This document shows positions 3,017-34,970 of a stretch of 64,000 nt of DNA, piece after piece. Made by a program: the position numbers and the translations under genes. Below the pieces are notes generated by a model, which was not told the DNA's origin, made no database searches, and worked only from the letters and a program-made list of their open reading frames with translations. Position 1 is the first letter of the stretch. Each line of letters starts with the position of its first letter. This DNA is from Takakia lepidozioides (taxonomy: Eukaryota > Plantae > Bryophyta): positions 5,084,001 through 5,148,000 of the forward strand of contig CM060732.1 in NCBI GenBank assembly GCA_030704615.1. Reading direction: 5' to 3'.

Positions 3017-3499
3017 GCAACGCAGATGAGCATGTACGTTGGAACCACTTGGACGTCAGGTTAGGCTAGGTCGTTGAATGGCTGCAATGATGAGCTTGTG
3101 GTTCACGAACATGATTCTAAGTCAATCTAAAGACAATGAGAATTGTTACATTCTGAGCAGCCGGGAGTGATGGTTGGCTGAATGAGGCTTACCAAAGAGC
3201 ATGTGAAAGCGCGGCCTAATCCGTCGATTAGGCAACACTAGAGCATGCTGTGTGACAGAGGGGGATGCGAGGAAGAGCGTCGCTGTGGGCGAGGGTATGG
3301 TGGAGTGACGCTTCTGACGTTGTATCTCTCTTCAGTGCTTGGCTTGGCATGAGCTTGTGTGTGGTGTGGATCTTTTGATTGCGTTTGCAGATGTCAGTTT
3401 TTTATGCTGCTTCCTGTCTGTTTGGATTCCTTGTTGCGGTTTAGGTGTCATAAACCTTAAGCTATTTTAGACCTCGCACCACCTCGCACTTCTGGAGGT

Positions 3500-4340
3500 G
3501 GTGTAGTGGTGATTGCCTTCTTCGCATCCAAACCACCAAATCCTTTGGCGAGGGAAGACGCTACTGGAGAAGTTCAAAGAAAGAAGAATTGTCCCCATGC
3601 AAAACTAGATCCGCTGATCGCTGCAGAAGCACTCTTACAAAGAGAAGGAACCAGGACTCTTTTAGAGAGGGGAAGCACCCCACATGAAATTTCGCATCGT
3701 GGTTTTGATTCTACCCAGCAAATTAGAGCCCGGGGACCACACAGATGAAAACCAAATACAAGCTAGCAAGATTTGATTGAGAACCAGCGCAAAACCTGCT
3801 AAGGACAGCATGACCGAACTCCAAAAGGCCAGCTTGGTGCGGAGCTTCAGGAGATTTGGTTCAAACCTTTGTTCTTCAGAGAGCCCGATACCAACTTGAG
3901 AGTGTGCGCCGAACCTGGCGAGAGCCATCTGAGGCCCAGATCGTGTCCCCAGGGCGGCCCATGCTGCCTTGAAGCATTGGGAGGCAGCTCCGTGAGGAGC
4001 CCCACCGATTTGCTCCAATTGACCCTTAGCCCATAGGGTCAATTTAGCCCTAGTGATGTTGGAGGAATCTTCATTGCTCAATATAAGCATGGCATTGTCC
4101 GCATACATGGATATTTTAAAGGAAGGCCCCTGCAACACCTTCAGACCCACAATATCTTGTCTAGAGCTAAGGAAGTGCCTAAGGGCATCAGCTGCTATGA
4201 GGAAGAGGTAAGGGGCCAAGGGGCATCCTTGTCTTACTGACATGTGAAGGGCGAAGGATTTGGAAATGGCACCATTAACGGTCACTTTACTGGACGCGGA
4301 GCTGAGAAGCAACTGTACCTATCTAGAGAAAGATTCAGGC
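3500..4340 (-). mobile_element. Non-LTR (LINE, L1/Tx1-like) reverse transcriptase fragment, decayed
   Basis: ORF 3662-4312 has VRQGCPLAPYLFLIAADAL and YADN (YADD-like), then the LSLAGFALVLNQILLA motif. It is truncated at ~4340. Confidence 0.85.
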
Positions 4341-4445
4341 CAGCGTAGCTACGGCGTGAGCCCAGCCCCGTGAGCGTGGGAGCTGAGCTCACGTTGTAGC
4401 TGCAAAGCATGAGCTGAGCTCACGCTTCAGGGAAGCGTGAGCGGC
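4341..4445. repeat. Cluster of (G/C)TGAGC short repeats at the LINE breakpoint; candidate terminus of the large element
   Basis: GTGAGC / CTGAGCTCACG / CATGAGC motifs repeat starting exactly where the LINE RT reading frame stops. Confidence 0.4.
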
Positions 4446-4758
4446 ACAAATCTGCTGGAGAAGCAGGTCCTATAGGCGAGGATTGCAGGAAGAGGGCCTA
4501 TTACCGTGGACAAAACAAAGGGGGCACCGTGCACCATGTCTGCAATGCCTGCACAAAAAGAGGAATATGAAAATATGGCAGATTTGAGCTCAGAATGATT
4601 GACACACTTTATTTCAATTCACAGATAGACGCTTACACTGAATGGCATGTGCATTTGCCCTGGTTCCGCGAACGAAATGTATGTGTTTGTCCTAAATGCA
4701 AAGTCTTTACACGGTAACCTAGAAACCAGCATGGGAAGCGGGCATGGCTCGTATGTAT

Positions 4759-7700
4759 TCAAAGAGAATTTGGCGGAGCCCTACGTGAGGTGTCCCGCTG
4801 TAGAAGGGTGATTACTTCTCCGTAGCCTAGTGTGGCTTGGTGAATGAATTGGTCTCTCTTACCGTCGCAGCACATAATTACAAAGTATATGTAATATTGA
4901 TGCTTGCAGGGGACCCACTTCCCTCTCATGCCGAGAGCGCCCTCACGCATCGTTACAAAATCCGGACAAGTGCACGTAGGGAAATTCCCCACGGTAATCT
5001 GATATTCTTTGCCATGAAGAACTGAGCCAATAGACAGCACTGTGTAAATCCGTCCATACCCCGGGGTAGGGACTTCGGTGATACGAGTCACCCGAACCTG
5101 CAAAATTTTAGCCGATTCCATCTTGCATTCGTGATCTGCACCCGAAGCGACACGGCGCACTGTTTTTCCATCTCTTTTTGTTGGGTGGGAGTTGGCACCG
5201 GGTGGAGCCATTGCTGGAGCATGTGGCACATCTGTGCCAACAGTGCATGAGGGCACCACCCGGGACTGTGCAAGACAGAACCCTCCCTCCTCCAGCATGT
5301 TTATCTCGGTTGATGACAGCGACGTCCCAAGTTTCACAAGCCAAATTGCGAGGGGAGGGGGCTTCATTATCACCGAAGGACGAACTGTTCCCTTGACGCA
5401 TCGTGCCATATCGTCTGGTCATTTGACTCCCCACTATGATAAGGTCGGAACAACCGTGTGAATGTTGGAGCTGGAGTTCCTCTGGAGCCTTTGCATATTT
5501 TTTATTTGCATTTCTTGAAAGAAGGGGTCCGAATTGCCATGCAAGCCACTCTAGATCCTGGTGGGGTGCGTTCTATATGCCACTCACTATCAATGCAATC
5601 AGATTCATGCACCATGGCCACCACCTCCTCCAATGGGATTCCTGCTGCTGTGCTTGCATGATCTGCACCTGCTCCACTGGAGGAGGACCCACCTGGGAAG
5701 GGGCGGGCACACGACTTAGTCTGCACTGGAGACACCCTTGGTACAGAGAAATTGACCCTGTCCGGCCGATGGGAATCTCCATCCGACCCTGGAGGAGTGT
5801 TCAATATCCTTTTGCATGATCCAAATCTTTCCTCGCCTTCCAAATGGGGGAGCCTGGATTGCAAAGGGGAGCCTTCAGTGCACCTGTTCAGAGCTCTGGC
5901 CATCTTCGATGGGTCTCCAGACCTACTCGCAGCCCTTAGCATCAACAAAGTTGTATCAGGGCCCTTGCCTCCGCCCCGTCCCATCAGAAAATTGCGGTAC
6001 TTGGTTTGTTGTGTAAGTGCCCGCACCATGTCATCAGCAGTGGCCACATACAAGTCACGTCCTGCTTTGGTAGACTGCTGCATCCAGGCGTTGTGAACAG
6101 TCTCCGCCAAATTACAGGATGGTATGTCGGCCAAGTCCTCCAAGGACATGTCCTGCAGGAGGCATTGCATGGAAATGTGAGGAACGAAAGGAAATGGAAG
6201 ACGTTCTGCGAGTGACAATCCAACAACCCCAAATGAAAAGACATGGTGCAAAGTGAAATTTGTATTTCTGGGATTGAAGAGGCTTACCGTCGTCATGAAA
6301 GCTCCCCACTGTCTGTACCTGAAGTGCCAAAAAACCAACCAGTCATCCAACTCCTTCAGGTGGATACCAGTAGCAGCACCAGAGGAGAACCACCAAGCCC
6401 GGATTGCTTGGTAAGTGCTCTCAGCTTCTCCCATTGAGGTGACATTTTTGTACTTGAGGCAGAGCCTTCTGTGCTCCAACTGAAGGTCAGGGCGAATGCA
6501 GCGCTTTGTATGACGTGCCAGAGATTGACTCCAATGGAAGAGGCATGTGCGCTCCTTATTTTCCATTGGGACCTTAGGATCCCCCAAACCAAACACGCGC
6601 CGCACTGCATTGAAATTTGCCTGTGCACTATCAGCCATGAAGCCCGCAAAATTTGTGTTCTGTATTCCATTGCGCTGCATGACGGCCAGGAGCGAATTCC
6701 ACATGAGCATCTGGGATTCAGTGTCCTCCGACTGCATATCACACATTGTTATAGAGAGCACACGTTGGTACGCTAGATCGTACACATGGCACGCCATGGT
6801 TGTCCAACCCTTCACCCGTTTGCAGTGATCAAACATTAACCAACATTTTGCCAAATCTCCTCCAGGTTGCATTCGGCGGACAATGCTCGCACCACTGCCT
6901 TCGCCCACTGTGGACATCTTAAACAAATACACCTTGGACGAGCCCTGGCCAGGGAAGATACTATTTTGAATGAATTCATAGCGACTCCTCGTTTGAGGTC
7001 CATAATGTTGTCCATGAATCCAGCAGTGCATGTGCCCATTTTGCCCATTTTAAGTGCATTCACTGGTTTCGAATATTGGGAGAGCTCAAACTACGAAAGA
7101 ACGATAGAAATATGTCCATCACTGCCTCAAGACAAATCTGATCCAGCATTAGTTGTGTCGCATCCCCTTCACCCAGTATGTGTTTTTCCAGGAATGCCTT
7201 GCTAGCTGCAAGCGCTATAGCAGAAGGTGTTGCACAAGGGGCATTGTGGAACTCCTACTTCAGCATATTTCTAGCGATCTCCACGCTATCCTGCAACTCC
7301 TTTGGACACATGGACACAGATGCTCGTTTTGTACCCCATATGAATGCAGGCACGAGTCATTGTTTTGCATCGGTGTGCGCCACCTAGTACATACGAGCGT
7401 GGCACACAGAAACACAAGACGGGGAAAGTTTGCAGAACCTCAGCACACTATTGGTCTTGGGAGGGGCAAGCCCTGGGGTTGAAAGGATTCAGGGGCACAC
7501 CTTCCCACTCACTTTTGTTGGTTCCCCCCTTTAGCGCTGTTTCTCAGGCTGAGGGCAAGAAATATCACCCACTTACAATGCCCAACGCAGACCGACCTCG
7601 AAATTTCAATCCATGTCATTGTGGACATTCGACGGTTTTGTCCGGCACCAAGGGTGTCCGTCATGTTTCTTGTCCATGCCCTGCAGAAGCCCAGATAGTC

Positions 7701-7900
7701 CAAGAAGAAAACATGGGAGGGTTGAGCTCAACACACATTTAGATGGCCCATAATCAAATCGCTGGCACGATTGTAACCCGTTTGCAAACGACCCCCCCAG
7801 GGACTCCCAATCACAAAAACGCAGCTGCTCTTGCACCCCACGGATCCCTGCGAGGGCTTTCAATTTCGAATGATCACTCGTATAGCTCCTGCCTAACTTG
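4759..7900 (-). pseudogene. GCM-like DNA-binding domain + MULE (Mutator)-type DDE transposase + C-terminal SWIM zinc finger, with stops/frameshifts
   Basis: GCM-like pieces GMDKKHDGHPWCRTKPSNVHND, RSVCVGHC and MTRACIHMG (7330-7700). MULE motifs FMADSAQANFNAVRRVF, CLFHWSQ (CxxH) and PSCNLAETVHNAW (catalytic E) in ORF 5502-7031. SWIM CTCPDF...CKH in ORF 4759-5409. 5' exons may extend to ~8500. Confidence 0.75.
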
Positions 7901-9669
7901 TCATGTCATCCAAGAATGGAGTCTGCATTGGCGGAGGAATTTCACCTAAACATCCTCCTGAGGACGAGTCTGAAAGAGTGTCCAAGATAGTGTAGTGGAT
8001 GTTGCTCTAAATCTTGTGTTCACTAGTTTCATGAACTGTCAGCGTAACTACTGATCCTGTATGTCTTCTCTCCTTCCAATTTGCCCGGACGCTGCTCCCC
8101 ACTCCTTCCACACTCGCCAGCCCTCGTTTCCCCCAGGTGCCCAGAATCCAAATTCCCATCCTCGTCCTACACCTCTTTTTGAACAAGCAGAGAACCCAAT
8201 TCCAGAGGGAACACTGTAACCAGCTCATCCTCATGAACAACTGCAAACCCATCGTCATCTACAGTGGCAGTCAGTGGAAGACTACCTGCATTGGAATGAA
8301 ATCGAGCGAGTCTATCTCGCTCCCTGGACATGTTTTCGTACATTGACAGAAAGTTGCGATTCACAGAGGAATCCCCGAACTGATAGCCCGTAATTCTCGT
8401 AAGGGGATCCACCCCAAACAAACTGAGGTAAAAAAAGGTAACACTGACCCAAAGACTACGGGCGATGCATGCAAAGGATGTAGGAATGACATGCACCGAA
8501 CTTTGCAGACAGCCACACTGAGAGACACCAACCAGAAAAACTGTTTTCTAAGACAAGAAGCCACAAGAAGTCGTGCTGTATTTGGATGAAAAACAAACCC
8601 TGAACATGACATAAAATCATCCATTATGGAAAGACGGCAACAACCCTGGAGAGCAGTAAAGAGGAAGACCCCGAATCTAATGAGGTTGTGTTGTGCCAGA
8701 AGAGCACAGCACAAACACTGACACTTCGGGAGACACCTCGCATGAGTGTGTGCAACACATGACCATTGTCGACACAACCCTTTATACCGAATGACCCCAT
8801 TGCGACGGTGACGGCGAAATGCAAACCGTAGGGTAGGCAGTACAACACACATGGACGCATTTGTAAAGCATAACAATTATTGCGAATCTGCAAGTACTGC
8901 TCGAAATCGAACTAGCATTAGATTTTTACGGCACTTCCGAATTTCAAAGAATGCAAGAAGGCTGCCATGTATTGGCAGGCGACGAAGTACATCTGACATA
9001 TATCACAAGTACATGCAACGGATCTACTTTTTTTCCACCACTTTATTTCTTAGATAATACAAAGACGCCGAAATGGATGAATTCCGTTCGCACACAATGA
9101 TGACACCCGCATCCAAATACGGTTAACAATGTCCAATTTTTACTTTTGTTACATGCCATAGCAATGCTTGTTGCAAACGTCACACTGAAGAGCTCCAGAG
9201 GCAGCGTGGGGAGCCCTTGTTTCCAACGGAGGAGGAAGAGAAGGAAGACGTTATACTTCACGAGCACTAGGGACAGGAATAGAGCCAGATATAGAATGAG
9301 GATGGAAAGAGTAGACGAAGAGGAAAAGGAGGAAGAAGAGGGCAAAGAGGAAAGTCTAGCGATGGAAGAGCAGGAATCTGGAGAAGAACAGCAGCCCGCC
9401 ATACTTCCAAGAACATGTGAGGAGGAGACTGAATCTGAGGGAGAGACGGACACCGAAGATGATATTGATGCTGGCCTCAGGAAGAATCAGATAGTGGAAA
9501 AGAGGATGGGGGAGATGCTCTAGAACATGCTCGGCGTAGAGAGCAGTCCGAAGCGCAAAGGGTCTCCGGCGATTGGGGAGTCTTTTGGAGCAGCAAAAAA
9601 AAAGGTATAATGTTTGAGACCAACCTTTGTGCTTCATTGGTGATGTGAACCCCAGTTGTGCTTGTATTT

Positions 9670-10121
9670 TAAATGGGGGGCTCAAACAGTGTGCGGTGCC
9701 GCACACTGTTTGAGCTTCCAATTCGGGGTGGATTCAATCTGCCATAGTGGCCCTATGTGGCCGTTTTGAACATGAAAAAACAAGCAAAATGGGGGGCTCA
9801 AACAGTGTGCGGTGCCGCACACTGTTTGAGCTTCCAATTCGGGGTGGATTCAACCTGCCATAGTGGCCCTATGTGGCCGTTTTGAACATCAAAAAACAAG
9901 CAAAATGGGGGGCTCAAACAGTGTGCGGTGCCACACACTGTTTGAGCTTCCAATTCGGTGTGGATTGAACCTGCCATAGTGGTCCTATGTGGCCGTTTTG
10001 CACATCAAAAAACAAGCAAAATGGGGGGCTCAAACAGTGTGCGTTGCCGCACACTGTTTGAGCTTCCAATTCGGGGTGGATTCAACCTGCCAAAGATGCC
10101 GTGTATAGGCGGTTTTCATAT
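9670..10121. repeat. 116-bp tandem repeat, left block (4 palindromes)
   Basis: GCTCAAACAGTGTGCGG-TG-CCGCACACTGTTTGAGC (or close variant) at 9680, 9796, 9912 and 10028; period 116. Confidence 0.95.
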
Positions 10122-10966
10122 CACTACAACAGATCGCGGTAGTTATGACTGCCAAACCATGGTAGTCATGGTTTTCATGACTTTGACCATGACTGCACCA
10201 TGTTTTTATATGAAATTGACCTCCCGCAGTCGTTCATACGACTGTAGTCATATGAACGACTATCTAAATAGTCGTCTGTATGACTACATGGCTCTGGAAT
10301 GGGCGGAAGGCTGGTCAACGGCAATTGACCAGATTTAGCTCACCATTCATAGTCATTTCCATGACTACAGTGTACATGGATGAGGTTACATAGTCATGAT
10401 GACTACTGGGGATTTTGTAATTTGGTGTGTATAATACAATTAAAACACCATATGATCATATGAATGACTAATGGGTGTATTGGTTAACAAGTAGTGAACT
10501 ATAATTCTTACAGTAAAGAGGTTGCAGGTTCAAACTCCTCTAAGTATCAAATGGATAAGATGGCCCTAGGGTTAGTAGGTGAGCTAGGGATAGCACGTGG
10601 TGCCCTAGATGGACTGCCACGTGGTTTTTTCATTATTATAAAATGCATTATGCCACGTGGCACAATGCGGTGCGACGCGGCGTTTGACATATGTTTTCAT
10701 TTTCTTAGTTTTTTTAATTTAATTTAATTTTTTAAATCAATTGCGCCTCACCACGTGGCGCGGCGGCGACGGCTACAGTATGGTATATATGACTGCAGTG
10801 AGAGATATCACTTGGTTCATATGACTGTAGTCATCCGGACCGTACCATCCTGTACTCATTGTATTGACTTGGTTTGCACGACTTACAATCATAGAAGTCA
10901 TATGTACCGTTTATGACTGCAGAATAGTTATATATACAGTTATAAATACCGCGATCTGTTGTAGTG
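10122..10966. mobile_element. Non-autonomous CACTA element
   Basis: Perfect 20-bp TIR CACTACAACAGATCGCGGTA (10122-10141 / 10947-10966) and many subterminal ATGACT/AGTCAT motifs. Flanking triplets TAT / AAT do not match. Confidence 0.92.
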
Positions 10967-10974
10967 AATTATAT

Positions 10975-13130
10975 GCTTGTTTTTTTATGTTCAAAACGGC
11001 CACATAGGGCCACAGGTTCAATCCACCCCGAATTGGAAGCTCAAACAGTGTGCGGCACCGCACACTGTTTGAGCCCCCCATTTTGCTTGTTTTTTTATGT
11101 TCAAAACGGCCACATACGGCCACTATGGCAGGTTCAATCCACCTCAAATTGGAAGCTCAAACAGTATGCGGCACCTCACACTATTTGAGCCCCCCATTTT
11201 GCTTGTTTTTTCATGTTCAAAACGGCCACATATGGCCACTATGGCAGGTTCAATCCACCCCGAATTGGCAGCTCAAACAGTGTGCGTCAACGCACACTGT
11301 TTGAGCCCCCCTTGTGCCTTGTTTTTTGGTGTGGAAATGGTGCACACAGGGGCCTCTCTATCTGGTTCAATCCACCCCTAATTCAAAGCTCAAACGGTGT
11401 GCGCCAACGCACACTGTTCGAGCCCCCCTTCTCACTGTTTTTTTCATAATAAAATCGTCCAGACAGGGTATCTCTATGAGGTTCAATCAACAATTTCCTG
11501 GCATCTCCAACAGTGTGCGTCAACGCACACTGTTTGAGCCCACCTTGTCATTGTTTTTTTCATTTGAAAATCGGCCACTTAGGGCATCTCTTTGAGGTTC
11601 AATGCACACTTACCTGGCAGCTCAAACAGTGTGCTTCAACGCACACTGTTTGAGCCCACCTTGTCATTGTTTTTTCATTTGAAAATTGGCCACATAGGGC
11701 ATCTCTTTGAGGTTCAATGCACACTTACCTGGCAGCTCAAACAGTGTGCTTCAACGCACACTGTTTGAGCCCACCTTGTCATTGTTTTTTTCATGTGAAA
11801 ATCGGCCACATAGGGCCAGTCTTGCAGGTTCAATGCACACTTACCTGGTAGCTCAAACAGTGTGCGTCAACGCACACTGTTTGAGCCCACCTTGTCATTG
11901 TTTTTTTCATGTGAAAATCGGCCACATAGGGCCAATCTTGCAGGTTCAATGCACACTTACCTGGCAACTCAAACAGTGTGCGTCAACGCACACTGTTTGA
12001 GCCCACCTTGTCATTGTTTTTTTCATGTGAAAATCGGCCACATAGGGCCACTCAGGTAGGTTCAATCCACCCCGAATTGGAAGCTCAAACAGTGTGCGCC
12101 AACGCACACTGTTTGAGCCCCCCTTCTCATTGTTTTCTTCATAATAAAATCCTCCAGACAGGGTAACTCTGTGAGGTTCAATCCACACTAACCTGGCAGC
12201 TCAAACAATGTGCGTCAACGCACACTGTTTGAGCCCCCCTTGTAATTGTTTCTTGAATGTGAAAATCGTGCACACAGTGGCCTCTCTCTAAGGTTCATTC
12301 CACCCCTTTTTGGAAGCTCAAACAGTGTGTGGCATTGCACACTGTTTGAGCCCACACTTGACATTATTTTTTCATTTTAGAATCGACCACAAAGGTCATC
12401 TCTGTTAGGTTCAATTCACACTTACATGGTAGCCCAAAGAGTATGTGTCAACGCACACTGTTTGAGCCCCCTGATTTGCTTGTTTTTTGACATGAAAATT
12501 GTGCACCTAGGGCCAGTCTGGCAGGTTGAATCCACCCCAAAATGGAAGCTCAAATAATTTGCGGCAACGCACACTGTTTGAGCCCCCTTCACTGACTTTT
12601 CTTTTATTTCAAAATCGGCCACTCATAGCCACTATGCCATGTTAAAATCACCCCTTGTTGCAAGCTCAAACAGTGTGCGGCAACGCACACTGTTTGAGCC
12701 CCCTTGTCTGCTTGTTTTTTGTTGTGAAAATCGGGCACCTAGGGCCACTCTGGCAGGTTGAAACGAACCCTTATTGGAAGCTCAAACAGTGTGCGGCAAC
12801 GCACACTGTTTGAGCCCCCTCTCTGCTTGTTTTTCTATGTGAAATTGGGCCAAACAGGGCCAGTATGCATGCTCAAAACACCCATAGTTGGTAGCACAAA
12901 GAGTGTGCGGCAACGCACACTGTTTGTGCCCCCTTTTTGGCCCCCTCTCTACCTGTTTTTTTTGTGGAAATGTGCCACATAGGGCCAAATATCATGTTCA
13001 AAACACCACTATTTGGAAGCTGAAACATTGTGCGGCAACGCATAGTATTTTCGGCCCCCACACTGCTTGTTTTCTGATGAGAAATTGGGCCACATAGGGC
13101 CTGTCTGCCATGCTCAAAACACCATCGTTT
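10975..13130. repeat. 116-bp tandem repeat, right block (~18 palindromes), opposite orientation to left block
   Basis: Palindromes at 11039, 11155, 11271, 11388 ... ~13018. The linkers are the reverse complement of the left-block linkers and diverge progressively rightwards. Confidence 0.95.
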
Positions 13131-16100
13131 CATGCCTCTCTCTTATATCAATTTGAATGAACAACTCTGCAGGAGAAGATGCAAAGTGTGGCGGATGGGA
13201 TCCCTTCGGGGCAGGGGAAGGAGATCATTGTTGATGTGGACGATGAGTTCTATGAAAGCAAAGCTGCTGAGATGTTGGGGGGTCAGAAGGTAAACTCTCA
13301 GCTTGTGGTGCAAAGTATGCTTGCCCCGGGTGGGAGGTTGAAGATTCCCCTGTGTATGTTCGTTTCCATGCCCGTCGTTCGTCCACCCCTCATTAAGGAC
13401 ATCCTGAAGCTGGAGGCCGAGTTTGTTCATGGGTATTTGGATGGATCCGCAGTCTCTTACGTTTCTACAAAGGATTCCAGAGGCAATGAGCTCCTTGTGG
13501 ATGAGTCAATCGTGGACTCCTGGGATCCCATTTGGAGACAGGTGAACGAATCCTTCGAACTTCTTCTCTCCAAGAAACCTTCCACCCAGGCATTCTCAGG
13601 GAAGATGTTTCACGTTTGGGATGGCAACCACCGGTTGCTTGCATGGATGGCTGTCATTGGGAGGCTGCACTCACAGGAGAAAGAGTGGCATTACTCTGTT
13701 CGATCGATGGTGCTGGATTGTGACGGGAACATGATAGGTCTTCTGACGGCAATGAATGATGTGAACAGTTTGGTTTCTCATTCTGCATGTTCCACTTGTG
13801 GTTCCGTGGTTCTTTGGTTCCAGTCCTCTGTTGACGGTCCTTGAATTTCATTCTAACTTTCACACATCATTCTACAGAGGGACGGAGACATCGCATGTCA
13901 AAACGAGTGTGGTTCACACACTGTACAGGATACAAAGGATCGGGCAGATGCCCTTGACCAACTTCAAGACCATCCTTTCAGCAGAGACATACAAGAAGTG
14001 CGAAAGCTCCAAGACATCAGAAACGTGGTACTCGTCGACCCGTGAGGCTTTCATGGAGTATATGTACGTGGTGAGATACATCTTCCATCATCTGGCCTTT
14101 CGATATTTCTGCTTCCACATGTTTGTTTTTGTTTGTTTCCCTTGCCCTTGGGTTGATGCAACTCTCGTGCATTCCCTTGCAGCAAGACATTGCAGATGCA
14201 GGAGAGCGTGGCAAACTGGAATACTACAGCTCTACCCCTGAGGAGAGAAGGACAACAAAGGGTGTTGAGAGTCACATCCAGAAAGAGATGACCGCCACAA
14301 GAAGGACTATTATGAGTGCTTTTGTGAAACAACTGAGAATTGCAAACCCAACCTTCGGACCAGAGTTCCTTCAAGAGGTGAAAAACCATTACAACAAGCC
14401 AGGCAAGCCGGAGATGGCCCAGGAGAAGTTACACAGGTTGTCTACTGCCGTTGTGTCTTCAGAACAGAAGGTGAAGTGGCTACAGATATGGAACTCCGAT
14501 CCCACTGTTAGGGATACCCACATGTTCCCCAGGCCGGAGAAAGAGAAGAAGACCCAGCGTGTCATACCTGTCAGTGACAATGTGCTGGACACATGGCTTC
14601 ACAAGGCCACTTACTGGAGCCAGGTATGATGTCCTTTGCTGTGTCACTTTCTTTTCGCTTTTTCTGTCATTCTTTTTCCATGTTACATTTTTCCATACAC
14701 TTTTTCTATGTGATTGTTTTTGTGTTCATTCTTGCTTCTGTATTGGTCTGCACTTGGAGGAAAGGGCCCGGTCGGTTCTACATACGCAGCTAGCTGACTA
14801 TGGGATCACCATGACAGAACCGAAGGTCTCCTTCCAAGCATACATGAGGAAATGGAGTGCCACAGTGTGGCAATCTTGTTTCTTCAGAGAGTTCAGCAAG
14901 GATGCTGGCATCAATCGAACAAATGAGCTTGACCAGCAAGAGAAAGGAGAGGAAGCCTAGAAACGATGCCTTTACAGGTGCAAAATGGACTATGCTTCTT
15001 TGTTTTGTATAGACACAATCTCCTCCATCCAACGTCTTTTTGGCTGGCTCATATGAGTTTGTGGTGGAGTGTAATGTGTCGCATACTCTTTTAGGGGGTC
15101 TTCGTGATGGGGTGGAAAAGCTGGGAGACAATATTTGCATTGCATAATGAGGTTGTCTCTGTTCCTGCAGGTACATAAAGTATGTTCTCATGGCAGAGAA
15201 CTGCTTGGACAAACATCCTGATTTCGTGGACCTTTGGCTTGTCCCTGCTGGCAACCAGACCATGTTTACTACGGGGATCTTGCATGACTGGGGCCCAGAC
15301 CATCTTTCTGCTTGTGGTTGGTATTTGGATTACCCTGCTTCAGAGACCCCAGCTCAGGAGGTTTCTTTGAGGAGAGAGAATGAGCGTATAGTAGCTACCA
15401 CCGCAGCAGCCGACCTCGACATTCATGAGAGAAATTTGAGGACTCTTGCAGAGAATGAGCCTCCCGCTCAGGATACACCGGGTAAAGGTAGAAAGGCAAA
15501 GGGAAAGGATGTTGCTAGTGGTGTGGGGAAAGGAAGGGGTAGGGGGAAGGGGGCACAAGGGCAGGTAGGTGGGCAGGGAAGTGTTGTAGATATTGGCCCT
15601 CTGGTGGTTGTCCAGCAGACTCCACCGCATGGTAGGGGATCCGGGAGAAAGAACAAGGGGGTGGTTGATCCCAAGGACCCGTACCATGCAGTGGAGTATC
15701 CCACGAGGGTCATTCACCCTACCAGGTTGGAGATGGCCAACGTCGGGTTCCTTGCCATGATGGAGTCCAAGAAATTTGATTACAAAGGCGAACCATCACC
15801 AGTGTGGGAGAGGATTGTGGAGTTCCTCGGCACGGTGCATGTTGTCTTTTGCTTCTTGTCTGTTGTGTGCATGGATTGTTTCAATCCTCTTGAGCATTCC
15901 ATTACATGCTTGTTTGCAGGCTAAAATGACCAAATCTTGGGTGAACGGGAAGGAGAAGCCATATGCAGCCGAACTCATCATCTTGGACATCCCTGATGGG
16001 TTACCAGTCCCGGATGTCCCTCCATCGGGTGCTTGTCCAGGTTGGAATGCTTTTGATGAGCGCTACTGGCGGTGGATTTTCTCCTTTTACAATTTCTTTC

Positions 16101-17875
16101 TATCCGATGCAGGTGTTTTGGTGCTCATCCAGTCCATCGACCTTCGCTGTCGCCGTGCACTTGCCAGCTATTTGAAAGCCTCCGGTATGAGGGTCGTGAA
16201 GACATGGAATTGTGTGAACAGCATGTACCTGACAAAGGGGGATCGTCCCAGAGAGATGGTAAATCTGCCTTCTTATTCCTCTTCTTGGTGGTTCTCGGAT
16301 GGAGTTGCATAAGTCGCTCAAATGAATATGTAGGGGCCTGGTTTTCAAGCTTCTTAGTTCCTTGTGTATGTCCTGTTCGCAGACTTGTTTGTTTGAAGTT
16401 GTTTGTCTCGTCCGAGTGCATCCACCTACGACTCCAGCCGTCATTAGGGAGTTCGCCATCACTCATGGGGGCAAGTTCATAGACGAGAGGACAGATCCTC
16501 CCACGGATGACATGCACCACAACTACGTGGACATCAACGTGTGCTTGCGAAGGGGGAATGGGGTTCCTTGGAGAGGGGCCAGGGAGAGGAGCCCGGTTTT
16601 CATTCAGACGATTGTGGAGTGCTGCACCTACACAGACGCCAAAGTTCTGGATTTGTCAATGGGCACAGGTTCGTCTCTTCAACATTCACATTTTGTGAGG
16701 TTTGTTTGACCTTGCACTTTCAGCTCTTCCCACCGTTCCAAATGTGTCTTCAATGTCTGTTTCCTTCATTGTATTCCACTGCAGGTGCCTCGTACCACGC
16801 TTGCAAGGCCAGTGCGCGACATCTCTTTGGGATTGAAGGGGATGCCGAGATTTACAAGAACCTCATAATGGGTTTGGGTGGACACACTTCTCAAGTCTTT
16901 CCGAAGCCCCTACCCGTTGATGTTGATACAGGGGAGACTTCCGACAAGGAGCAGGATGACGACTTTGCCTGTGAGCAAGTTCAACCTGTGGATGCTTGCA
17001 TTGTTGTTTCAATACCCAGAATCACTGTTCTTAAGGCAAAGTGCACATGGGAGATATCCTCTTCGTTGGACTTGTGCATTGCATCATTGAGTTCAAAATT
17101 GGTTTTTGTCCACTTGTGCAGGAGTCCGCGTGCTTCCACTGACCCTCCAGGGCTATCACACATTTTTGGACTTTTTTCAAGTCATCCTCAGTCTTACGTC
17201 CTACCTGTCTATGCGGAGGCACTCGCAGCAAGCATGTCCATTCATGGCACTCGCAGTCCAACCATCGACGGCCGTGGTAGAAGACGTGGTGTTGGGGCCG
17301 GAATCTTTGTGGATGACATAGTACAGGAGGTCGATACTGATTCTGATGACTGTAACACTTGATATGAAGTTTTCTTTTGCTTTCATTCGGGGCCAATTTT
17401 GAAATGGGATGGTTGTGTGTCCTCGTTGTCATGTTTGCAATGTGTGCGTGGGATGCAAATTCATAGGAACAAACTATCGTTGGAGATGGGGGTTGCATGG
17501 ACTGCGCGGGTTGTTCCTTCAATCTATTTAGTGTTTTGCGGAGCTCACAGGCTTGTGTGCATTGCAAAAACAAACAAACGTCTTTGGTTCGGGTAGAGCA
17601 TTCTCGCATCATTTGCTCGTTGGTCTCCAAACCATTCCTGCTAGAAGAATGCTTGGTAAATCCATCATGATAAAGTCCACATGATCAAAGAGCGTTTAGG
17701 CATTCTCAATTCTGGTGAGCATCCATGATGCTCCCGCACATACCTGGCATGTTTGCAATCCTGGGTCTAGGATGTGGCCCAGATTCTATGAACTCTGGTT
17801 TACTGGCTGTACAGTATTGATGTTGAAAGGTTTGATCTGGGGTACAATACCTTTCCTATTGACAAGAGAAAAAGT

Positions 17876-20800
17876 TCAAAAGAGAAGAGACAAGAGAAAA
17901 AGAGTGTGTCTGTATTGGAAAGTACCTGACTCAACATTCACCGGCTCTCTAGTTGAATTTGACACATCCTCAGGCTCTGATACTGCATTTGGTACCCACC
18001 TGCTTCCCTTACGAGTGCATTTTGCTCTCCATAGCTCACTATGTGCTGCAGCACTGGATCTTAGGGAAGCTTCACGTCTTGCGGCTATCGCTTCCTCGCC
18101 TCGCAATGTATCAAATTCTGATTCGTTTGTAAAGTTCTCTTTGTTTCTAAATCTGTGTGCGATTATCCTGTACCAGTGCTGAAACGTTTGAACTAGTGGA
18201 CTTTTCTTATTTTTGCCACCGGAGTGTTGTGTGTGCCTTTGATAGGCAGTCTTCGCAGCGTGATGCGAGTTCTCCATGCCCTGGCAGACCACACTGCAAG
18301 GCTTCCATATCAATCTACAAAGTACGGAGCATGTCGAACAAGCACATGCTGCCAAAGACACAAATTTTGTCAGTTGTGAGCTCACAAACAACCAAATCGA
18401 TTTCACCAAATTCAAACATAAATTGAAATGACGGGATCCAGAGTTCACTTGCCATGTAATGTGTAACATGATGCTCTCCAAAACATTTGATGTAGAGTCG
18501 GCCCCATTGTTCCACCTTCTCTTTGAAATCTGCAACCGATTGATCGACACCAAATCTGAGACCATTGAAATAGGGCCGCAGTCGATCCAAGGCATGCCAC
18601 TGCTCCAATCTCTCTCTTCGTACTGCTCCATTATTCATTCTGTTCTTTTCTGCATTCACGACATCCACATATAACTTCCGAGGCTCTATGGCAACAGGAT
18701 TGTCCTTGAAAAGCTTCAATGCATGGGCTCCACTAAAAGAGGGCTTGTTTGGGACATTGTTTGCCCTCCCAGACAAATCTTCATCCTTAAAATTTGAACA
18801 TTCCCTCCATGGGCACCCGTGAGTGACAACAACTTCTGCATCTCATCAACGGCCAATTTTTGGAGAGCTTTGTAACGAATTGTCCAAATATGAATGAAAT
18901 GCAAGTGAACAATCTTTTCAATCACTCGGTTGAAAGCATGTAGGGTGCATATGTGGACTCTGTCCAGTGGTATGGGCAAAATGGGCTTCCAACGTCCTGA
19001 AGTTGCAGCCCCTGTGAGTGGTTGCGCTGCCACTTTCCTTGAAAACAACCCTTCATTCCAAGTGTATTTGGTTCGTTTCTTTATGGTTGCTTGGGCTTGT
19101 GTAGTGGTGCCCACTACAGGCTTCGTGCGTTCTTGGTTGCAGTAGATGCAACTGTGTAAGCTATTTGCTCCAGCTCCCAAGTTGTACATCACTTTTATTG
19201 TCTTCATATCTGCCGCCATATGCCATTCCACCTGAAAGGATCCAATACCAGGGACATCCAGTGGCTGTCCTTGCTCCTGTGCTTGAATCAACGCAGGAAT
19301 GGTTTGCGAGAAGACCCAACTCAATGTTTCATAGGTTTCCCGCACCACTTGGAATGAAGCGATGGGCCAAATCTCCCTCTCTGACTAAACTGAGAAGAAT
19401 TGTTCACTGTTTGGCTCAATCGTAGTGTCCAAAGCCCGGTTCATCAGTGTTAGAGACACTCTCTCCATCTTTTGAGCGTGCACAATTTCAACTGCATCTT
19501 GATGACAAAAATAAGAGGGTGTCCCTGCAATTCTGAAACCAAACACAGCCAAATCCTCAATGCCCAGGTCCTCAATGCCCGGGTGTTTAATCAATCGATT
19601 CCTATCAGAAGCTTTACCCTACATCTCTTGCAACACTACAAAATTAAGGTGTTACCTGCGGGTGTGATGCCGTAGAGCTCGACCATTGTGCGCTGCACTT
19701 GTTCCACATCGACAAAGATGGAATTATTATGATTGAGCGCTATTCTGACAGGCTCTTTGCTCTTTGACTTGGCAGTGGCTGGAATCTCAAGGCTATTGTT
19801 GATGCAATAGTATTCGCCAACATACTCACGTAGCTTGAGATTCAACGTTTTCCGAAGCAATGACACCTTATGAGGATTTGGCAAGCAACCAATGTGAAGG
19901 CCCCGACCAGAAGCTTTGGCAGACATTTTGAACTTTTTATAGATGGCTCCATATCCATTGTGCGTTATACCTTGCCGATCACAAGTTTCTAGAATCTCAT
20001 TTGCTCCTACTTTCTCCCCAATCTTATCCAAGTAGTAGTTGGCCATATGCACACCAACTTTGCTCAACTTCGCTGATTCGCACATTGAATTAACTTCTGT
20101 CTGGGACAACATAGAGGCGAACACCTTCGCAGTCTGCACTTGTGTCTCTTTACTTCCACACAAGTGATTTCTCGTTCCCTGGGTTGCATTTGCACTTTGA
20201 ATTTCTCTCGCAATAGCTGGGGCAATGATAGCTCTTGCTAAACGCCTCAAATGTTTTGCATGACCGCCATTAGGCGCCAATTCAGCCACATCCTTCCTTG
20301 GTTTGATGACACCCCTGTACCCATAGGGTGTCCTCACCATTTTTTCCATCCTCAATTCCCGTCGCTTCAAGGTCGCCTTGGTTTTGCGTAGCTCAGAGCA
20401 AATCGAATCCAATTTTCTTTTGTGCTCTTCTTTGAGCGATTCTATCTCTATCCAAAATTCTATCTCCATTTGATCGCGCTCATCGGAGCTCAGTACATCA
20501 GCGAGCGGCCTAAACACTCCTCGTAAGATGCCTTCATGCTGTGATATTGCTCTTTCAGAGCTGATACCTCCGCTTTCAACGATTCAGTTGCTAACATAAT
20601 CTGACCATTTTCTTCCTCTACTCTTTGTCTACGAGACGTTTCTGTGTTGTTGAATTGTAAGGGTATCTCTCTATCCTCAGCTGAATCTGGCAAACTCTTG
20701 ACCAGCTCACGCAACAACGATATCTCTTTCTGAGCCTCAACGAAATTCAATTCAATTCTTGTATGATTTGCGGCAAGATTTTCAGAGTAACCCAGTAGGC

Positions 20801-21053
20801 CGCTCTTGCCATCCCTAGTAAATTCCAGAAACTCGCTCACTGTCCGAAATTGTGGACGTTTGCCGTCGACGGGGCTGTGTGGATACAAAGATCCATCCAC
20901 CCACAAATCAATATTACTCGCCCCTGCTTCTCGTCTATGAGAGAATTCTGATTTCGGAGTTTGCTCATGAAGCATGCGATTCCTTAGTACCAATGGTGCA
21001 TATTTCCCAGCTATGGTTGCTGATAATTTGTAGCTTCCCCTCTCATTAGCCAT
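17876..21053 (-). pseudogene. RAG1/Transib-like DDE transposase, intron-containing, with frameshifts and stops
   Basis: RAG1-core-like motifs occur in order: GITHNGYGAIYKKF..LPNPHKV; FCHQDAVE (D, 19496-19498); SEREIWPIASFQVVRETYETL; AADMKTIKVMYNLGAGANSLHSCIYC (D, 19208-19210; CxxC); ICTLHAFNRV; THYM|HVLVRHAPYFVD*YGSLAVWS; QGMENSHH (E, 18272-18274). Confidence 0.75.
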
Positions 21054-22189
21054 CTTTGAACACAGTCTGACAGGCTTGTTGCTACGCACAAAACATCACT
21101 GAAATGATCACGGATTTGAACTTAGATTTGGAAGTTGCAAGGAGTGCGACTCTCTAGGCTATAGATCAGTTGTTGTTCCTCATGTACAATGTTTTAGAAC
21201 GACGAGCTATGATCCTTCCACTTTCAGTACCAAAGTGGATGTGATATGTGCTGTCACTGTGGCTAGAGTACTTTGAGGCATTATTTTTTAATCAATTCTT
21301 GAGTTGTAGATATGACTGCACCGAGAAAATTTGTACATACATACATTACATTAGTGTCCAACTCTTGAACCAACAGGAAATCAATTGGCTGCAAGTACTA
21401 ACAATTGGCTGACCTCCACGTTGTATTTGTAGGGTGTGGAAGCTCCTGGACAGCTGCTGTTACTGGTATAGACACCTTATTGCTGCAGTGTTCTGGCAGT
21501 GAAGAAATGAGCACAGAAAAGCCACAGGGACTTTCAGGGAGGATTTGGGGGGGCTTGCGATAGGGGTGGTTATGACTTGAATTTTTTAGTTTGGGGCCTT
21601 TCTTTCAGTTGTTGGGTGACATTTCCTGCGAAAGGAGGTCACAAACGTCAGCACAGTAAACTTTTTCACACGAAGCTGCAAATTCATTGAAACACAGATA
21701 CCTGGCAAGTGAAATAGTTTGGGTGACTGGACTATCACAAAATGTACGAGATTGCCACCCCTAGAGAGTGTGTGCTCTGTCAGCATTTTTTGGCATGTTC
21801 AGTGGGACAGTTCCTCCGTCCACAAACAAAGGAGAAGAGAGATTTACACATACCTTTAAACCTTGAGTCACGGAGCTCTGGTGGTGCGAGCAGCAGCCCC
21901 ACGTAGATGCTTCTCTGCCAGTGCTGCCCTCCTCTTATCTTCATTGAGCCATGGCTACACCCCACATTCATCTCTCAAACCCCCATCCCTCTCTCTCTCC
22001 CTCTCATGGGCTGCCATTTCCGCACCAGTCACACCGGAATAGGGCGCTAGCTGAGAGGTCTGATTAGAAAAATCTGTCTTTAATTTTCTTTAAAAATACC
22101 TCCTGATTTGTGAAGATGTCGCATGATCATCCAACCAAAATCAAGGGAGCAATGGAAATGAGCAACTCGAGGGCTCAAGGTCTGGGGAA

Positions 22190-22503
22190 AACTATGCCCA
22201 GCTGCACCACATCTACTACTTCAAAAGTTCACCTTCTGAACAAAGGCCACATCCTAGTTAAACAAGCAGTCCATATAAGCAGCATAACCACTGAATGCTA
22301 CCACTCTTCCATACTCCATTCAAAGTGGGATCTCCACTCTCCTCTCCCACAGTCCGTTCCCACTTCACTGGAACCAATTCAGCACTTGGAATACCACCAT
22401 TCATATCAAAGGCAATCAACTGCTGCAACGGGAGAAGTTGCGGTCTCACCCACCTGGTTATGAGTTTCTGAGGCTTTTGACCCCATTTTTCTTCTGGTGC
22501 CAA
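22190..22503 (-). pseudogene. Possible degenerate FCP1/NIF-like phosphatase fragment
   Basis: QQLIAFDMNG resembles the LLILDLNG motif at ~60660, and an FEVV-like stretch lies downstream in another frame. Heavily decayed. Confidence 0.25.
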
Positions 22504-24746
22504 GTCAACAACTTCTGAGCCACAAGTGCAGATGGGTTGACAATGTTAGCCTATAGTCCGACTCTCTTAATGAATTACAGTAGAAAGAAAAAAAAAATTG
22601 AAATACTTAGAATCAGATTGTTACATGTCCAATCTGTCATCATGTTAATCATGTTAAATTTTGAATAATGTTTTATTATTTTAAATAATAAATATGTGTT
22701 GATTTAATTCGTACAGTAATATAACTTTTAATGATTCTAATAAGTTTAGGTTATGACTAAAAAGATGAATACTAAAAATAACTAAAAAATGATTAAAATA
22801 TAAAGATAAACTATCAAACCTTTTATTGCTATATACAACTCGTTCTTCCACTTAAGTCTAGACTCAAGTGGTCTGGCATCCTTCTATCTTTGATGATTTA
22901 CTCAGTCTATATTTTGTATAGTGAAGTATTTGTACAACACATGTTTGAGCACCAGGGACTCGCATTTGGACTGTTGCTATTTCCCCGGCAAAGAACATAC
23001 ATATAACCAGTAAAGTCAACCCCAGGGGTTTGTGAAGGAAGCAAGCATGTATTTCTACAAATCCACCCTTAGCCTTGGGATCTTCGTCCAAAGCACATGA
23101 TACAGGGGGCCAGATTGGATGCAGACGATCCATCGCAACATCTATTGTAAGAGGCACACAAACAGCTTTGCTCTGGCCTTCACTGCATAACTTCAATCCC
23201 ACCCCCTGCAGGGAGGAGCTGTCCCAGTCTCCAGTACAGCTGCCATCTGTTTGGCCTGATCTTCGAAGTGGCCAGTAAACTCAACTGCTCCAAACACAGG
23301 ATATAGATCAAACGGACATAAGAGTAAACAGCTCAGGTGCAGGTAGCAAGAGACAGGGAGAGTCCTTCTCAACCTATCATTAGATAGACAGTGAAGGCGA
23401 AGATTCGTCCACTCTTTGCAAAGAAAATACAGCAGCACACAAAGCGAAGTGACCAAATCTAGGAACTGCGTCCAGGCTCTAACACCCAGAGTAAACCACC
23501 ATACTGAACACAGCATACTGTCTAAAGGAAACAGAACGGCAGGGAAACTGCGTACATCTATCTTGTATCCTTTTGGTACAATAGAACTAAGTCTCTGTCT
23601 ACAAACACTACGTTGAATGTATTCAGTTCCATCATCAGCCAAAAATAGCTCCAAAAAACAGGTACAGGAACCCATGCCAAAACCAGCATCACCATCTTCG
23701 CAACCATGTATACTTACATTGGACCTGTCTTAATAGATACACAAACTACCTATTGGGGAAACACCCTACGCTATGTGAGGAAATGAGTTATCACATGGTA
23801 CTTCCAAACTCCCTTGAAAATTTCACCATAAGACTTACCCATTCTGATAACACTTACAACTCCAACAGTGAAAGAAATAATTTAGCCAACCACCATTCTA
23901 TGATACTGTCCGACAGAACACTGTAACTCTTTATTGAGACGAGAAGTTTGCAGAAGGTATAGACAATCTTCTTGTCACATTTTCACAGGTAGCCTCCTTG
24001 CCTTGCTCATTAGCTGCATGGTTTTTTGTGCTCTAAATCCGTTTGAGAAATAGCAATAGAACACCATGCCTAGGTACAGCAAATTGCCCTATATTGTACT
24101 GCCCCTTGCTGGCGCAGAACTGATCAAAGACATCTGAATTACTCGGTACCGTTGGAGCTTCAAGCTTTTCCCCTGTTTCATTTCAGTCACAACAACGCAA
24201 TCCTCAGTAGGGGGGTTTTCGATTCATAGGACTTTCCATACATTTCACAGTGAACTCAACCAGCATGCTTCAGATCATTATCAGAAATTAAGAATAAAGG
24301 TTCGCATTGTAGGCATATGACCCATACTTTACAGAAATGTAATAAAGAAAAAAGCAAAGTCCTAGGAGTAAGATCACACCCTTGTCAAAGATCGACTAGG
24401 GATTTCCGACAAACATCCTCAGTGCTCGACTGTCCTAATGATTGCCCCACCTGAGCCTGTTACATTTAATTTGTTGATAGAAAACCTGTCATGCAAATTT
24501 CAACAGTTCTTTGTTCTTAAGAGAAGACACACATTACCTGGCAGAGATTGGGAGACAGAAAATGGTGTACACTGTGGAGCCAAAAGCATTGCTGCAACAG
24601 CTGCCAGCATAGAGGGTAGACAAGCTAAAGGCCTGTACAAGTTACAATGTTCCTTCCTTCAAATATATACCTCCCTGAGGCTGTTAAACATCAAAATAGT
24701 CAGATGATCTGCCTTGCCCCAACCATGGTCTTCAGATCGGTGCATT

Positions 24747-27237
24747 CTAGTCTGGAAAATCAGTCCACAGATCTGCATCAAATTGTGCCAACACATCTGA
24801 TAATGACACTGCTCCTTCCTGGCCTCCAGTCGCTGACCTTGTCAACCCTTCCGTTCCACACTGAAAATCTTCAAATGATGCAGCCCATTCTTGGGGTGGT
24901 CCAACCAGTTCATCAAGGTTTCCACCATTTGACATTGGCATAACTTGGTTCTTTGGCAAAGGACTATCTAGGTCATTGTGGACGTGCTGGTCTACTCTGC
25001 CTGAACTAGAAATAGCGCTAGGGATGGAATGTGGAGTGGATGCAGCTTGGTGGCTGGAATGAACTGGTGCCCTATTGGTGATGGAGTTTTGTCGGTCCAC
25101 CTGAGCTGTGCCAGTATGGCTCTGACTGTTTGGAATCAAAGGTCCTAATGTTCGGGAACCAGCTTTTGCAGCACTACCCTCCACCCCAACACATGGCATG
25201 ATGTGATGGAACTCATCTGACATAGGAAGGTTAGGGGCAGGGCTGCAAGAAGGATAAAGGAGAGTTGGACAAGGCAACCCTGAAAATGAGGCAGTTGTCG
25301 GAGAGGTGATTCGAACCCTGCCACACATGGATCTTCCAGCAGCTATTATTGATGGATTGTAAAGACACAGAGGCGAAGCCATGGCAGCTTGTGGCAATAT
25401 CCTTGGTGGCCGGATTAGCTTCACGCCAAGATGGGATGCCTTTGGGCGAGGCCGTTTAGGCAACTTAATGACCAAGGATTTTAGCCGCTCACTACAGGGC
25501 GCAGCTGCTTGCAGACCCATGTGCAGCGGCCTGGGCCCCAGGGGGGTCTGCCGGTATGGTTGTTTGGTTGTCGGAGAAGCAAAGGCAGAATGTAACGGAG
25601 TTGGTAAACTTGATGGAGCTGTTGAGTTCACTACTTCCTGGCTGTGGCTCCCACACATGTCTAACCCACCTGGAGTGCTCAATTTAGTCAGTTTCTTGGA
25701 GACTGATGTACCTTACATGTCTACAAGTGGTTTGACTTGAACATACAGCTTGTGAACACTCAGTTCAAAGATAGGTCCTGTTGTATCTCTGAAAGCCACA
25801 TGATCAAGTTCAGGCATACAATATTCCAAAGGTCACAAATTGTACTCACCTGGCAGTATGGAAGCCCTTCCTACAGGAGCAGACTGCTTCGGGCTTCTCT
25901 GGCTTGTTGGCAATGTGCCAGATGAATTGATTGCGGCCATCATAGTGTGCTGACGGCCTAGTATGGCTGGCGCTGCAGGTCTTGCATCTACAGAGCCTCT
26001 GCGGCAAGGTGAAAGAATATGTGCTTTACTTGTTAAGTTAGAGATTGCTGAGGTAGGGGATCGCATGGAGGAGTGCAAAGGCAGTAATGACTTGTTTAGC
26101 TTCCTTAGGGTTTTCCATTTCACGTCCTTGTCAGATGCATGGCAATGATCACCTCCATGATACCCATCACCCCACTGACAACATGGAGCTTGCTCATCGC
26201 ACACATAGCAGTGGCACTGCATTCAACATTCACTTCATCAGTAGGTTACAAACCTCTGATTCCACAGCACTGAAAAGATATCTTCGGGGTAAGTACAGTT
26301 TGCCGCCCCTCTCAGTGACCTGATGGATGCAATCCTACATGGGGAGTACAAGGAAAAACGTCTTTGATTGAATTATTTCAATTCTGGCCTCAAACTCCTC
26401 ACAAACACTCCGGCAAGTAAGCTTTGTAATTGCAGTCCCATGGACAACCATAATAAGAATCAGATACAATCAATCACCTGTGAGCAGTACATCACATGCA
26501 GGGTACTCCTGAAGGGAAAGTGGACACATAGGTGTCTGGCGTGCGGGAAGTCCCTACATGCAACCTGCACAAGTAGAGTTTTCGAAGAGCGAAGTAAGCG
26601 ACAACAAAAACGACCGCGAAAGAAAAAAAAACCAACAACACTAAACATGAAGCACGTAGGAAAGACCAGGAGCGTATAAAGAGATTTATAGACCCACACC
26701 CACCGACTTCGTATACCAGGATATTGAGAAAGACTGACTTCATGAAGTTAAAGCACCTCTCGTGTCCAAAATTCTGTCGTCCAGGGGCATGACGGCATGA
26801 CGTACGTACATTCAACAAGTGCATACACAGCAGAGACCTAATTCTAGAGACCTAATTCTGAAGGCAGATGTGATTGTCTACTCCAAATACAACATGGAAA
26901 TATGGCCCCCCATGCTCACAGGTCCAGTTTCACCAGTCATAACCAAGTCGTCTGTGTCACAAGCAGTAGTAGCCGTGGTTGTGGTAGCCACAGTGGGGTC
27001 ACCCTCCAGGATACGGCACTCCTCATCCTCAATGTCGAAATCGACTGAAACTCTCTTGTCCCTGACCCGCTTTACAAGATCTGCAGGCTTATCAATGATG
27101 ATGACATCATCATCCACATCAACCAGCTCGGACACATTCTGGCATGGATGCAGGGCAGCGTCTTCATCGTCGTCATCACTACTTAACTCAACGACATATG
27201 GTTCGGATCCCATGCCTACAAAGGCTTGTCCCCCCAC
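24747..27237 (-). CDS. RPM1-interacting protein 13 (RIN13)-like Cys/His-rich protein, 4 exons
   Basis: Exons ~27237-26920, 26564-26478, 26216-25850 and 25711-24747 have GT-AG junctions in frame. Family motifs GETGPVACRDFPHARHLCVHFPF..H..YC.QCHCYVCD..APC..W.....HCHA are present. Confidence 0.8.
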
Positions 27238-33880: not shown

Positions 33881-34084
33881 TAAAACAACCCATCGTCCCT
33901 CAATTATGTGTGTTATGTTTCATTGTGTTCAAGAACTGTTGTAATTGGCCCACTGTTCACAATTTGTGGTCTCATTTATACAATGTGTCTGTCCACATGA
34001 ATATACCAGAGTTAGCGATATCAGAGTCATGAGGTGACGGAAATCCATGTATGAGTAAAAGGAAACATCTACATGTCCAAGCTC

Positions 34085-34868: not shown

Positions 34869-34970
34869 GTTTTGGGAAGGACGTGGTTTGGAAGATGGTT
34901 TCGTTTAGAAGAACATGGGAGAGGGGACATCAACAACGGGGAGAATTTCCTTTATAGAGGGCTGTTATTT

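Follow-up and report, generated by a model that had tools for sequence, protein, structure and literature searches.

Gene and feature content of the window

The window, by which we mean the whole stretch of 64,000 nucleotides that was analysed, contains three decayed genes for DNA-acting proteins in close succession. A Mutator transposase gene lies on the minus strand, a ParB-methyltransferase (ParB-MTase) fusion gene on the plus strand, and a RAG1-like transposase gene on the minus strand. Both this arrangement and the domain calls (GCM domain with Mutator fold, ParB-like, N6_N4_Mtase and RAG1 fold) agree with a preliminary description of the same DNA. Spliced gene models were searched one exon at a time rather than joined. 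Most window ORFs were without a match in Pfam scans, and PDB sequence searches were likewise blank.

The window also contains several features outside the three genes. A tRNA-like SINE with an A-rich tail and, by eye, an apparent 10-bp target site duplication (TSD) is present at 1430-1700 on the minus strand, where ARAGORN finds no tRNA. Probable host genes, again judged by eye, occupy 22400-27300 and 41500-44300 on the minus strand (a Cys/His-finger protein and an arogenate dehydratase-like gene). An LTR retrotransposon at 47763-53953 has LTRs of 315 bp with 97% identity to each other; its left end carries a tandem repeat of 11 bp and CACTAG type. CACTA-type genes (DUF4216 and Transposase_24) are found at 57012-62024, adjoined by an ORF for a NIF/FCP1-like phosphatase (60083-61276, E 1e-16); a weak NIF match near a transposon is also seen at L088 8151-8594.

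The Mutator transposase and its conserved end

The first gene (~8331-4759, minus strand) encodes a decayed Mutator (MULE) DDE transposase with a GCM domain and a C-terminal SWIM finger, and has 235 homologs. The coding sequence is broken by stops at 8169 and 5504, its frames are scrambled between 7066 and 7677, and an intron is present at ~6159-6287. The DDE triad and CxxH motif are intact in the window (D at 6830, D at 6632, CxxH as CLFH at 6545-6536, and E at 6104), and the D, D, C and H residues are invariant across 43 aligned homologs. The predicted model of one homolog, P0004, has ISCth4 of the IS256/Mutator group as its top four matches (E 4.6e-4 to 2e-3) and also matches the GCM domain 1ODH with a probability of 0.99. 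The SWIM finger gives a weak Pfam match (E 0.083), and the Pfam scan of the transposase found no MULE or GCM match above the cut-off. An intact transposase copy, with ORFs of 721 and 461 aa, is present at locus L087. Scans of viral contigs with the Mutator and RAG1-like transposases were both negative, and 16 single 17-mer matches in viral contigs were taken as chance.

Downstream of the transposase gene, positions 4341-4445 (minus strand) form a terminus of GCTCAC repeats ending ...TAGCTACGCTG, which aligns with 11 homologous ends and is near-identical to the end at L050. Homologous loci have in common GCTCAC repeats downstream of the transposase and a closing motif resembling TAGCGTCGTTG, after which their flanks are unrelated, and the window agrees exactly with these ends at 4341. 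Because the homologs share this end and differ in their flanks, we take 4341 to be the true element end. The adjoining flank, outside the element, is a LINE reverse-transcriptase fragment (3400-4340, left limit approximate, minus strand; RVT_1, E=1e-4). The block of genes had previously been said to start where this reverse transcriptase is cut. The reverse transcriptase does stop at 4340, but the homologs identify 4341 as the element's own terminus. Neither the upstream half of the LINE nor a repeat of the 9-bp flank was found on the right side, and a 5'-truncated LINE or a deletion would explain the missing half equally well.

No TIR pair or TSD was found, as the preliminary description had also reported. 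None of the loci, among them the window, L087/L089 and L006/L090, showed a second end, a TIR pair or a TSD, and none of them is a complete copy. The 19 kb upstream of L087 and the 16 kb downstream of the L006 MTase likewise contain no paired end or TSD. Two candidates in the window were rejected: a right terminus at 17543-17564, which has a chance-level score and falls within PPR-homologous sequence, and a 10-bp inverted match at 21078-21087, which is attributable to chance. End-like sequences are present past unrelated third ORFs in L064 and L090 and could belong to other elements. Judged from these sequences, full elements may span 15-21 kb with variable extra cargo. Elsewhere in the window, six TGAGC repeats are clustered at 34957-35037, starting GGCTGTTATTTCAT, and resemble the end-like sequences at L064 17842 and 18283; this cluster may be the end of another element.

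The ParB-methyltransferase fusion gene

The second gene (13173-17362, plus strand) is positioned head-to-head with the transposase gene and has exons with AG acceptors. A ParB/Srx-like exon (13173-13770, plus strand) has 524 relatives and bears a DGNHR motif, a candidate signature of the GxxR type, with G155, N156, H157 and R158 conserved among them. Middle exons at 13878-15835 (plus strand) encode helical and basic low-complexity regions, contain a TAG at 14958, and are conserved in L002, L006, L028 and L086. The exons at 15920-17362 (plus strand) resemble a beta-class amino-methyltransferase, with motif IV (DIPD) followed by motifs X and I (DLSMGTG) and an acidic motif II. This motif order (IV...X, I, II), the circular permutation of beta-class N6A/N4C enzymes, is present in both the window and L006 exons.

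The ParB exon matches PHROG 1033 (ParB-like) in 9 of 46 aligned members, weakly and below the curated cut-off (best E 0.0027), and is without a match in Pfam and PDB searches. Positions 172-218 of the L006 homolog match Pfam N6_N4_Mtase (PF01555) at E 0.0014, below the cut-off, and the accessory exons match no other Pfam family. ParB and MTase motifs are joined in single ORFs in the relatives P0198, P0233 and P0204, which supports the fusion. The catalytic pattern (D/N/S)PP(Y/F/W) is replaced by DIPD in the window and by DGPN, DCPM, DMLE and DVLS in linked copies. The catalytic aromatic residue of motif IV is missing from the window and most linked copies, and P0233 (DVPF) is the only one to keep it. 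Since motif IV is degenerate in the window, enzyme activity is uncertain. The MTase motif-IV exon retrieved no homolog when used as a query, although its length was limiting and absence is not implied. A weak MTase-like match at 36173-36250 was not confirmed by profile.

A palindrome array upstream of the ParB exon

A palindrome array of 22 units with a 116-bp period lies 5' of the ParB exon, bearing out the earlier report of such an array. It consists of arm A, with 4 units of 116 bp (9671-10121, minus strand), and arm B, with 18 units of 116 bp in the opposite orientation (10977-13130, plus strand). Every arm B unit has a palindrome, at most 36 bp long, whose centre is CGG-CA-CCG or a decayed version of it. 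In the window as a whole there are 16 occurrences of CGGYRCCG, where 0.68 would be expected. The two arms are separated by a non-autonomous CACTA element (10122-10966, an 845-bp MITE to which no strand is assigned) that has a 20-bp perfect TIR and no matching TSD. Because the MITE sits between the arms, and the arm A units are closest to the first two arm B units, its insertion was probably the cause of the local inversion. The preliminary description placed the array within an intron. In the window as in L002, a splice acceptor is indeed present 3' of the array. The candidate upstream exon, an acidic first exon proposed from sequence at 9165-9604 (plus strand), is nevertheless interrupted by a stop and out of phase, and we could find no homolog of it. 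An intronic position is plausible.

Across homologous loci the array is found with the ParB exon. A decay-tolerant pattern for the CGG-YR-CCG core, derived from the loci that were counted and imposing no position relative to ParB, has 22 matches in 42 kb 5' of ParB exons and none in 158 kb from other parts of those loci. Upstream of ParB-less transposases it has 2 matches in ~106 kb. The strict palindrome pattern has no match in 5 of 12 ParB loci. At L028, ParB is on the opposite side of the transposase, and so is the array.

Two further arrays were observed beside Mutator transposases. In the window, a second GCM-Mutator paralog at 32073-34900, 41% identical to the first, has its own palindrome array with a 116-bp period and no ParB; the core of this array is CGG-CA-CCG, its arms are unlike those of the first array, and the element is interrupted at ~34957. 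An array of 182-bp period with a different palindrome (GCGC-YR-GCGC core) is present at L087 6300-8400, with no ParB within 19 kb.

Linkage of the transposase and ParB-MTase genes

The head-to-head gene pair recurs at 11 distinct homologous loci (L001, L002, L006, L038, L039/40, L057, L063, L074, L080, L086 and L084), a count that includes L006, which was picked via ParB, and L084, which has the MTase exon and array only. The ParB-transposase distance is 2.8-5.1 kb in the 10 loci that keep the ParB exon and 4.8 kb in the window. The two best transposase matches both have ParB exons in head-to-head orientation with palindromes in between. L028 and L077 have other layouts. ParB is absent from 12 transposase loci with at least ~6 kb of upstream sequence, including the intact copy at L087, where 19 kb were searched. 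The transposase tree has ParB carriers on each of its two main branches, with 10 changes and no clustering, a scatter that fits an old linkage with repeated loss. ParB and transposase identities, pooled from three separately aligned exon pieces set side by side with X at stops, correlate with one another (Mantel r 0.42, p 0.02), a correlation confounded by host and weak among the JGI loci alone (p 0.07). The JGI Ga01162xx samples are, we presume, Sphagnum microbiomes.

Other ORFs lie beyond the MTase at some of these loci. Within one subfamily, an ORF is positioned tail-to-tail with the MTase (L084 228-2607, L077 5270-7550 and L064 18940-20590); it is not RAG1-like and has no Pfam match. Coiled-coil and Cys/His-finger ORFs at L090 7129-8222, followed by five GCTCAC repeats, are located ~9 kb past the L006 MTase.

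The RAG1-like gene

The third gene (21053 to ~17880, minus strand) encodes a decayed transposase of RAG1/Transib fold with 73 homologs, and is collinear with L091 at 53-68% identity. It is broken by a TAG at 19385-19387 and by frameshifts near 20500 and 18790. The predicted model of homolog P0301, which is 60% identical to the window exon, has a pLDDT of 79 and matches RAG1 at E 1.7e-5. Its top 42 PDB matches by Foldseek are all RAG1 or RAGL, followed by HzTransib.

ParB, MTase and Mutator sequences are absent from all five RAG1-like loci, namely L003, L004, L005 and L094, with flanks of 8-10 kb, and the short L091. No RAG1-like gene is present downstream of the MTase in ~16 kb at L006/L090, nor in ~4.5-5.5 kb at L077 and L084. 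Three RAG1-like loci share a convergently oriented partner ORF, conserved at 35-49% identity (L004 11932-13692, L091 5237-6283 and L094 12357-13660), which is absent from the window. The partner has a weak BAH match (E 0.11) and no kelch match in Pfam; by eye, its C-terminus is ubiquitin-like. No CAC-heptamer TIRs or 5-bp TSD were found in the window, L003, L004 or L005, where the copies are all old or truncated. CATTA(C/G)A starts upstream of the RAG1-like genes in L003-L005 were rejected for want of a matching right end. A DUF7869-containing element occurs near RAG1-like loci on differing sides (L003 10784-13507 and L004 1-2500) and is probably an unrelated abundant repeat.

Probably two elements side by side

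We conclude that a large DNA transposon of the Mutator superfamily, belonging to non-seed land plants, has probably left a decayed copy at positions 4341 to ~17400, and that its accessory protein would have a VANC-like anti-silencing role. PPR remnants and the sources of the relatives suggest that the host is a non-seed land plant. It is very likely that this is a two-gene element in which a GCM-DDE-SWIM transposase and a ParB/amino-methyltransferase-like fusion are divergently transcribed. For this element we demonstrate linkage of the genes, one conserved end, the transposase folds predicted from a homolog, and attachment of the array to the ParB gene. The window copy is broken and hence presumably inactive, and its right end is probably missing by truncation. 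The RAG1-like gene derives from a different, unrelated transposon with two genes, a piece of which adjoins the Mutator element. Between the two lies a PPR-gene remnant (~17520-17760, minus strand), 70% identical to 31488-31664, which is beside an ORF with Pfam PPR matches.

The preliminary description had suggested that all three genes may form one mobile unit. That proposal holds for the Mutator gene, the ParB-MTase gene and the array, which recur together at 11 distinct loci and have a conserved end at 4341, but fails for the RAG1-like gene, which at five loci occurs independently of ParB, MTase and Mutator sequences, an outcome that the preliminary description had itself named as a refutation. 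The similar decay of the three genes, which had been put forward in its favour, is qualitatively real but says little about common origin. A single three-gene element, with the RAG1-like gene as captured cargo of this subfamily, would account for the short distance of ~600 bp between the MTase stop and the 3' end of the RAG1-like gene and for the failure to find a right terminus between these genes. Moreover, in L084/L077/L064 and L006/L090 the MTase faces other ORFs tail-to-tail, beyond which end-like sequence rich in GCTCAC is found, and thus a variable third slot may exist. The complete lack of linkage at the five RAG1-like loci, three of which have a different conserved partner, the Mutator loci with no RAG1-like match, the intervening PPR remnant, and the failure to find a GCTCAC end or a repeat of the flank rightward of 21053 together make a three-gene element highly improbable. 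It is scarcely more probable that the ParB-MTase gene and array are a mobile unit of their own, or a domesticated gene, and have repeatedly landed beside a transposase gene. Around half of the transposase loci are without ParB-MTase, L028 and L077 are arranged differently, and relatives without introns exist (P0198, P0204 and P0233), but such repeated landing sits poorly with a constant orientation and a spacing of 2.8-5.1 kb at 10 loci that represent several assemblies and both branches of the tree, and with the absence of a terminus between the two genes.

The identity of the protein that binds the array was also considered. The GCM site is ATGCGGGT, and ATGCGG/GTGCGG half-sites in the window arrays resemble it. 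A real two-gene element might therefore have its array bound by the GCM domain of the transposase, in autoregulation or synapsis, with the ParB-MTase inactive or otherwise employed. The second window element, with transposase and array and no ParB, would fit this explanation, as would the different array of the ParB-less L087. A precedent is AtMu1, whose transposase itself activates cognate copies according to 10.64898/2026.08.24.746577. Set against this, the CGG-YR-CCG core tracks the position of ParB at L028, loci without ParB have almost none of it, and the array arms in L001 and L002 are unlike the GCM site. The second window element may also have lost its ParB, given its interruption. We consider binding by the GCM domain unlikely, and on the analogy of ParB with parS and of VANC with its motifs we lean towards the ParB-MTase as the array binder, with a regulatory role.

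A possible mechanism

In the mechanism we propose for the two-gene Mutator element, the GCM domain of the transposase would read the terminal GCTCAC repeats, and the DDE enzyme, as in Mutator biology generally, would cut and paste the element. ParB proteins bind parS; by analogy, the accessory protein might load on the array of CGG-YR-CCG palindromes situated 5' of its own gene. The connection between ParB function and the array is one of positional association, and CTP-dependent loading is putative. Once bound, the accessory protein could shield the shared divergent promoter from host 5mC silencing, much as VANC does for VANDAL. Such protection might come from an N4-C or N6-A mark placed on the CG/CCG-rich sites or, in copies with a degenerate motif IV, from occlusion of these sites by the bound protein. 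Judged by its motifs, active methylation by the ParB-MTase is doubtful. The fullest version of this picture, a land-plant Mutator lineage with an active ParB-loaded amino-methyltransferase that places 4mC/6mA on its own array and so blocks 5mC silencing, beside an undescribed RAG1-like two-gene transposon, is equally tentative.

Few transposon-encoded anti-silencing systems are known, VANC and TnpA being examples, and MURB-type is another. Our literature search, whose coverage was incomplete (few subscription papers and no Repbase), found no anti-silencing system that uses a DNA-modifying fold and no published description of a Mutator/ParB-MTase or RAG1-like element of this kind. The ParB-MTase and its matched array offer a direct test of whether a selfish element writes or mimics a non-5mC mark in plant chromatin. 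They also suggest a possible route into plant genomes for bacterial amino-methyltransferases such as the enzyme that Marchantia uses in its sperm. Separately, the presence of RAG1-fold transposases and a convergent partner gene on plant-associated contigs would extend the RAG/Transib lineage beyond its known range.

Comparison with known systems

Mutator/MULE elements mostly have long TIRs, which are degenerate in the VANDAL type, and TSDs of 8-11 bp. The transposase described here resembles IS256/Mutator transposases (ISCth4) and GCM 1ODH in the predicted fold of P0004, in its DDE triad with CxxH, and in its C-terminal SWIM-like finger. It differs from those families in that no above-cut-off Pfam MULE or GCM match, TIR pair or 9-bp TSD was found. 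The RAG1-like gene has the predicted fold, acidic triad and equivalently ordered zinc ligands of RAG1, ProtoRAG and Transib, and its relatives share the convergent two-gene layout of RAG1L/RAG2L pairs (PMC8355894). In contrast to RAG1, ProtoRAG and Transib, however, these loci are plant-associated, the partner has a weak BAH rather than a kelch match, and a CAC-heptamer TIR and 5-bp TSD were not found.

The accessory protein has parallels in phage and prophage methyltransferases of ParB-terminase loci and in eukaryotic group-1 N6A/N4C methyltransferases (PMC4738411), in which ParB-like and circularly permuted amino-methyltransferase domains are likewise linked to mobile DNA. The ParB fusion in that survey is an HTH on a chlorophyte-type Dam, and a land-plant transposon-borne ParB-MTase fusion is not among the systems given in the available part. 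Motif IV is degenerate in the window protein. Marchantia MpDN4MT1 (10.1101/2021.02.12.428880) indicates that 4mC writing is possible in a land plant and, like bdelloid N4CMT (PMC8885841), is a bacterial-type amino-methyltransferase in a eukaryote. The likeness is at the family level, since MpDN4MT1 is a host gene with TSPPY and the window protein is transposon-borne with DIPD and a ParB domain.

The closest comparison is with the VANDAL elements of Arabidopsis (VANA/VANB/VANC; PMC5735166), whose introns and upstream regions contain motifs that have been amplified in tandem; VANC binds these motifs and removes silencing. Both are large multi-gene Mutator elements with an accessory gene and tandem short motifs in non-coding regions or introns. 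No VANC or VANB was recognised here in the Pfam results. The accessory protein is instead a ParB/amino-methyltransferase-like fusion, the motifs are palindromes built on a CGG-YR-CCG core, a GCM domain is present in the transposase, and anti-silencing is a putative function. The element would work in a VANDAL-like manner, yet it is not a VANDAL.
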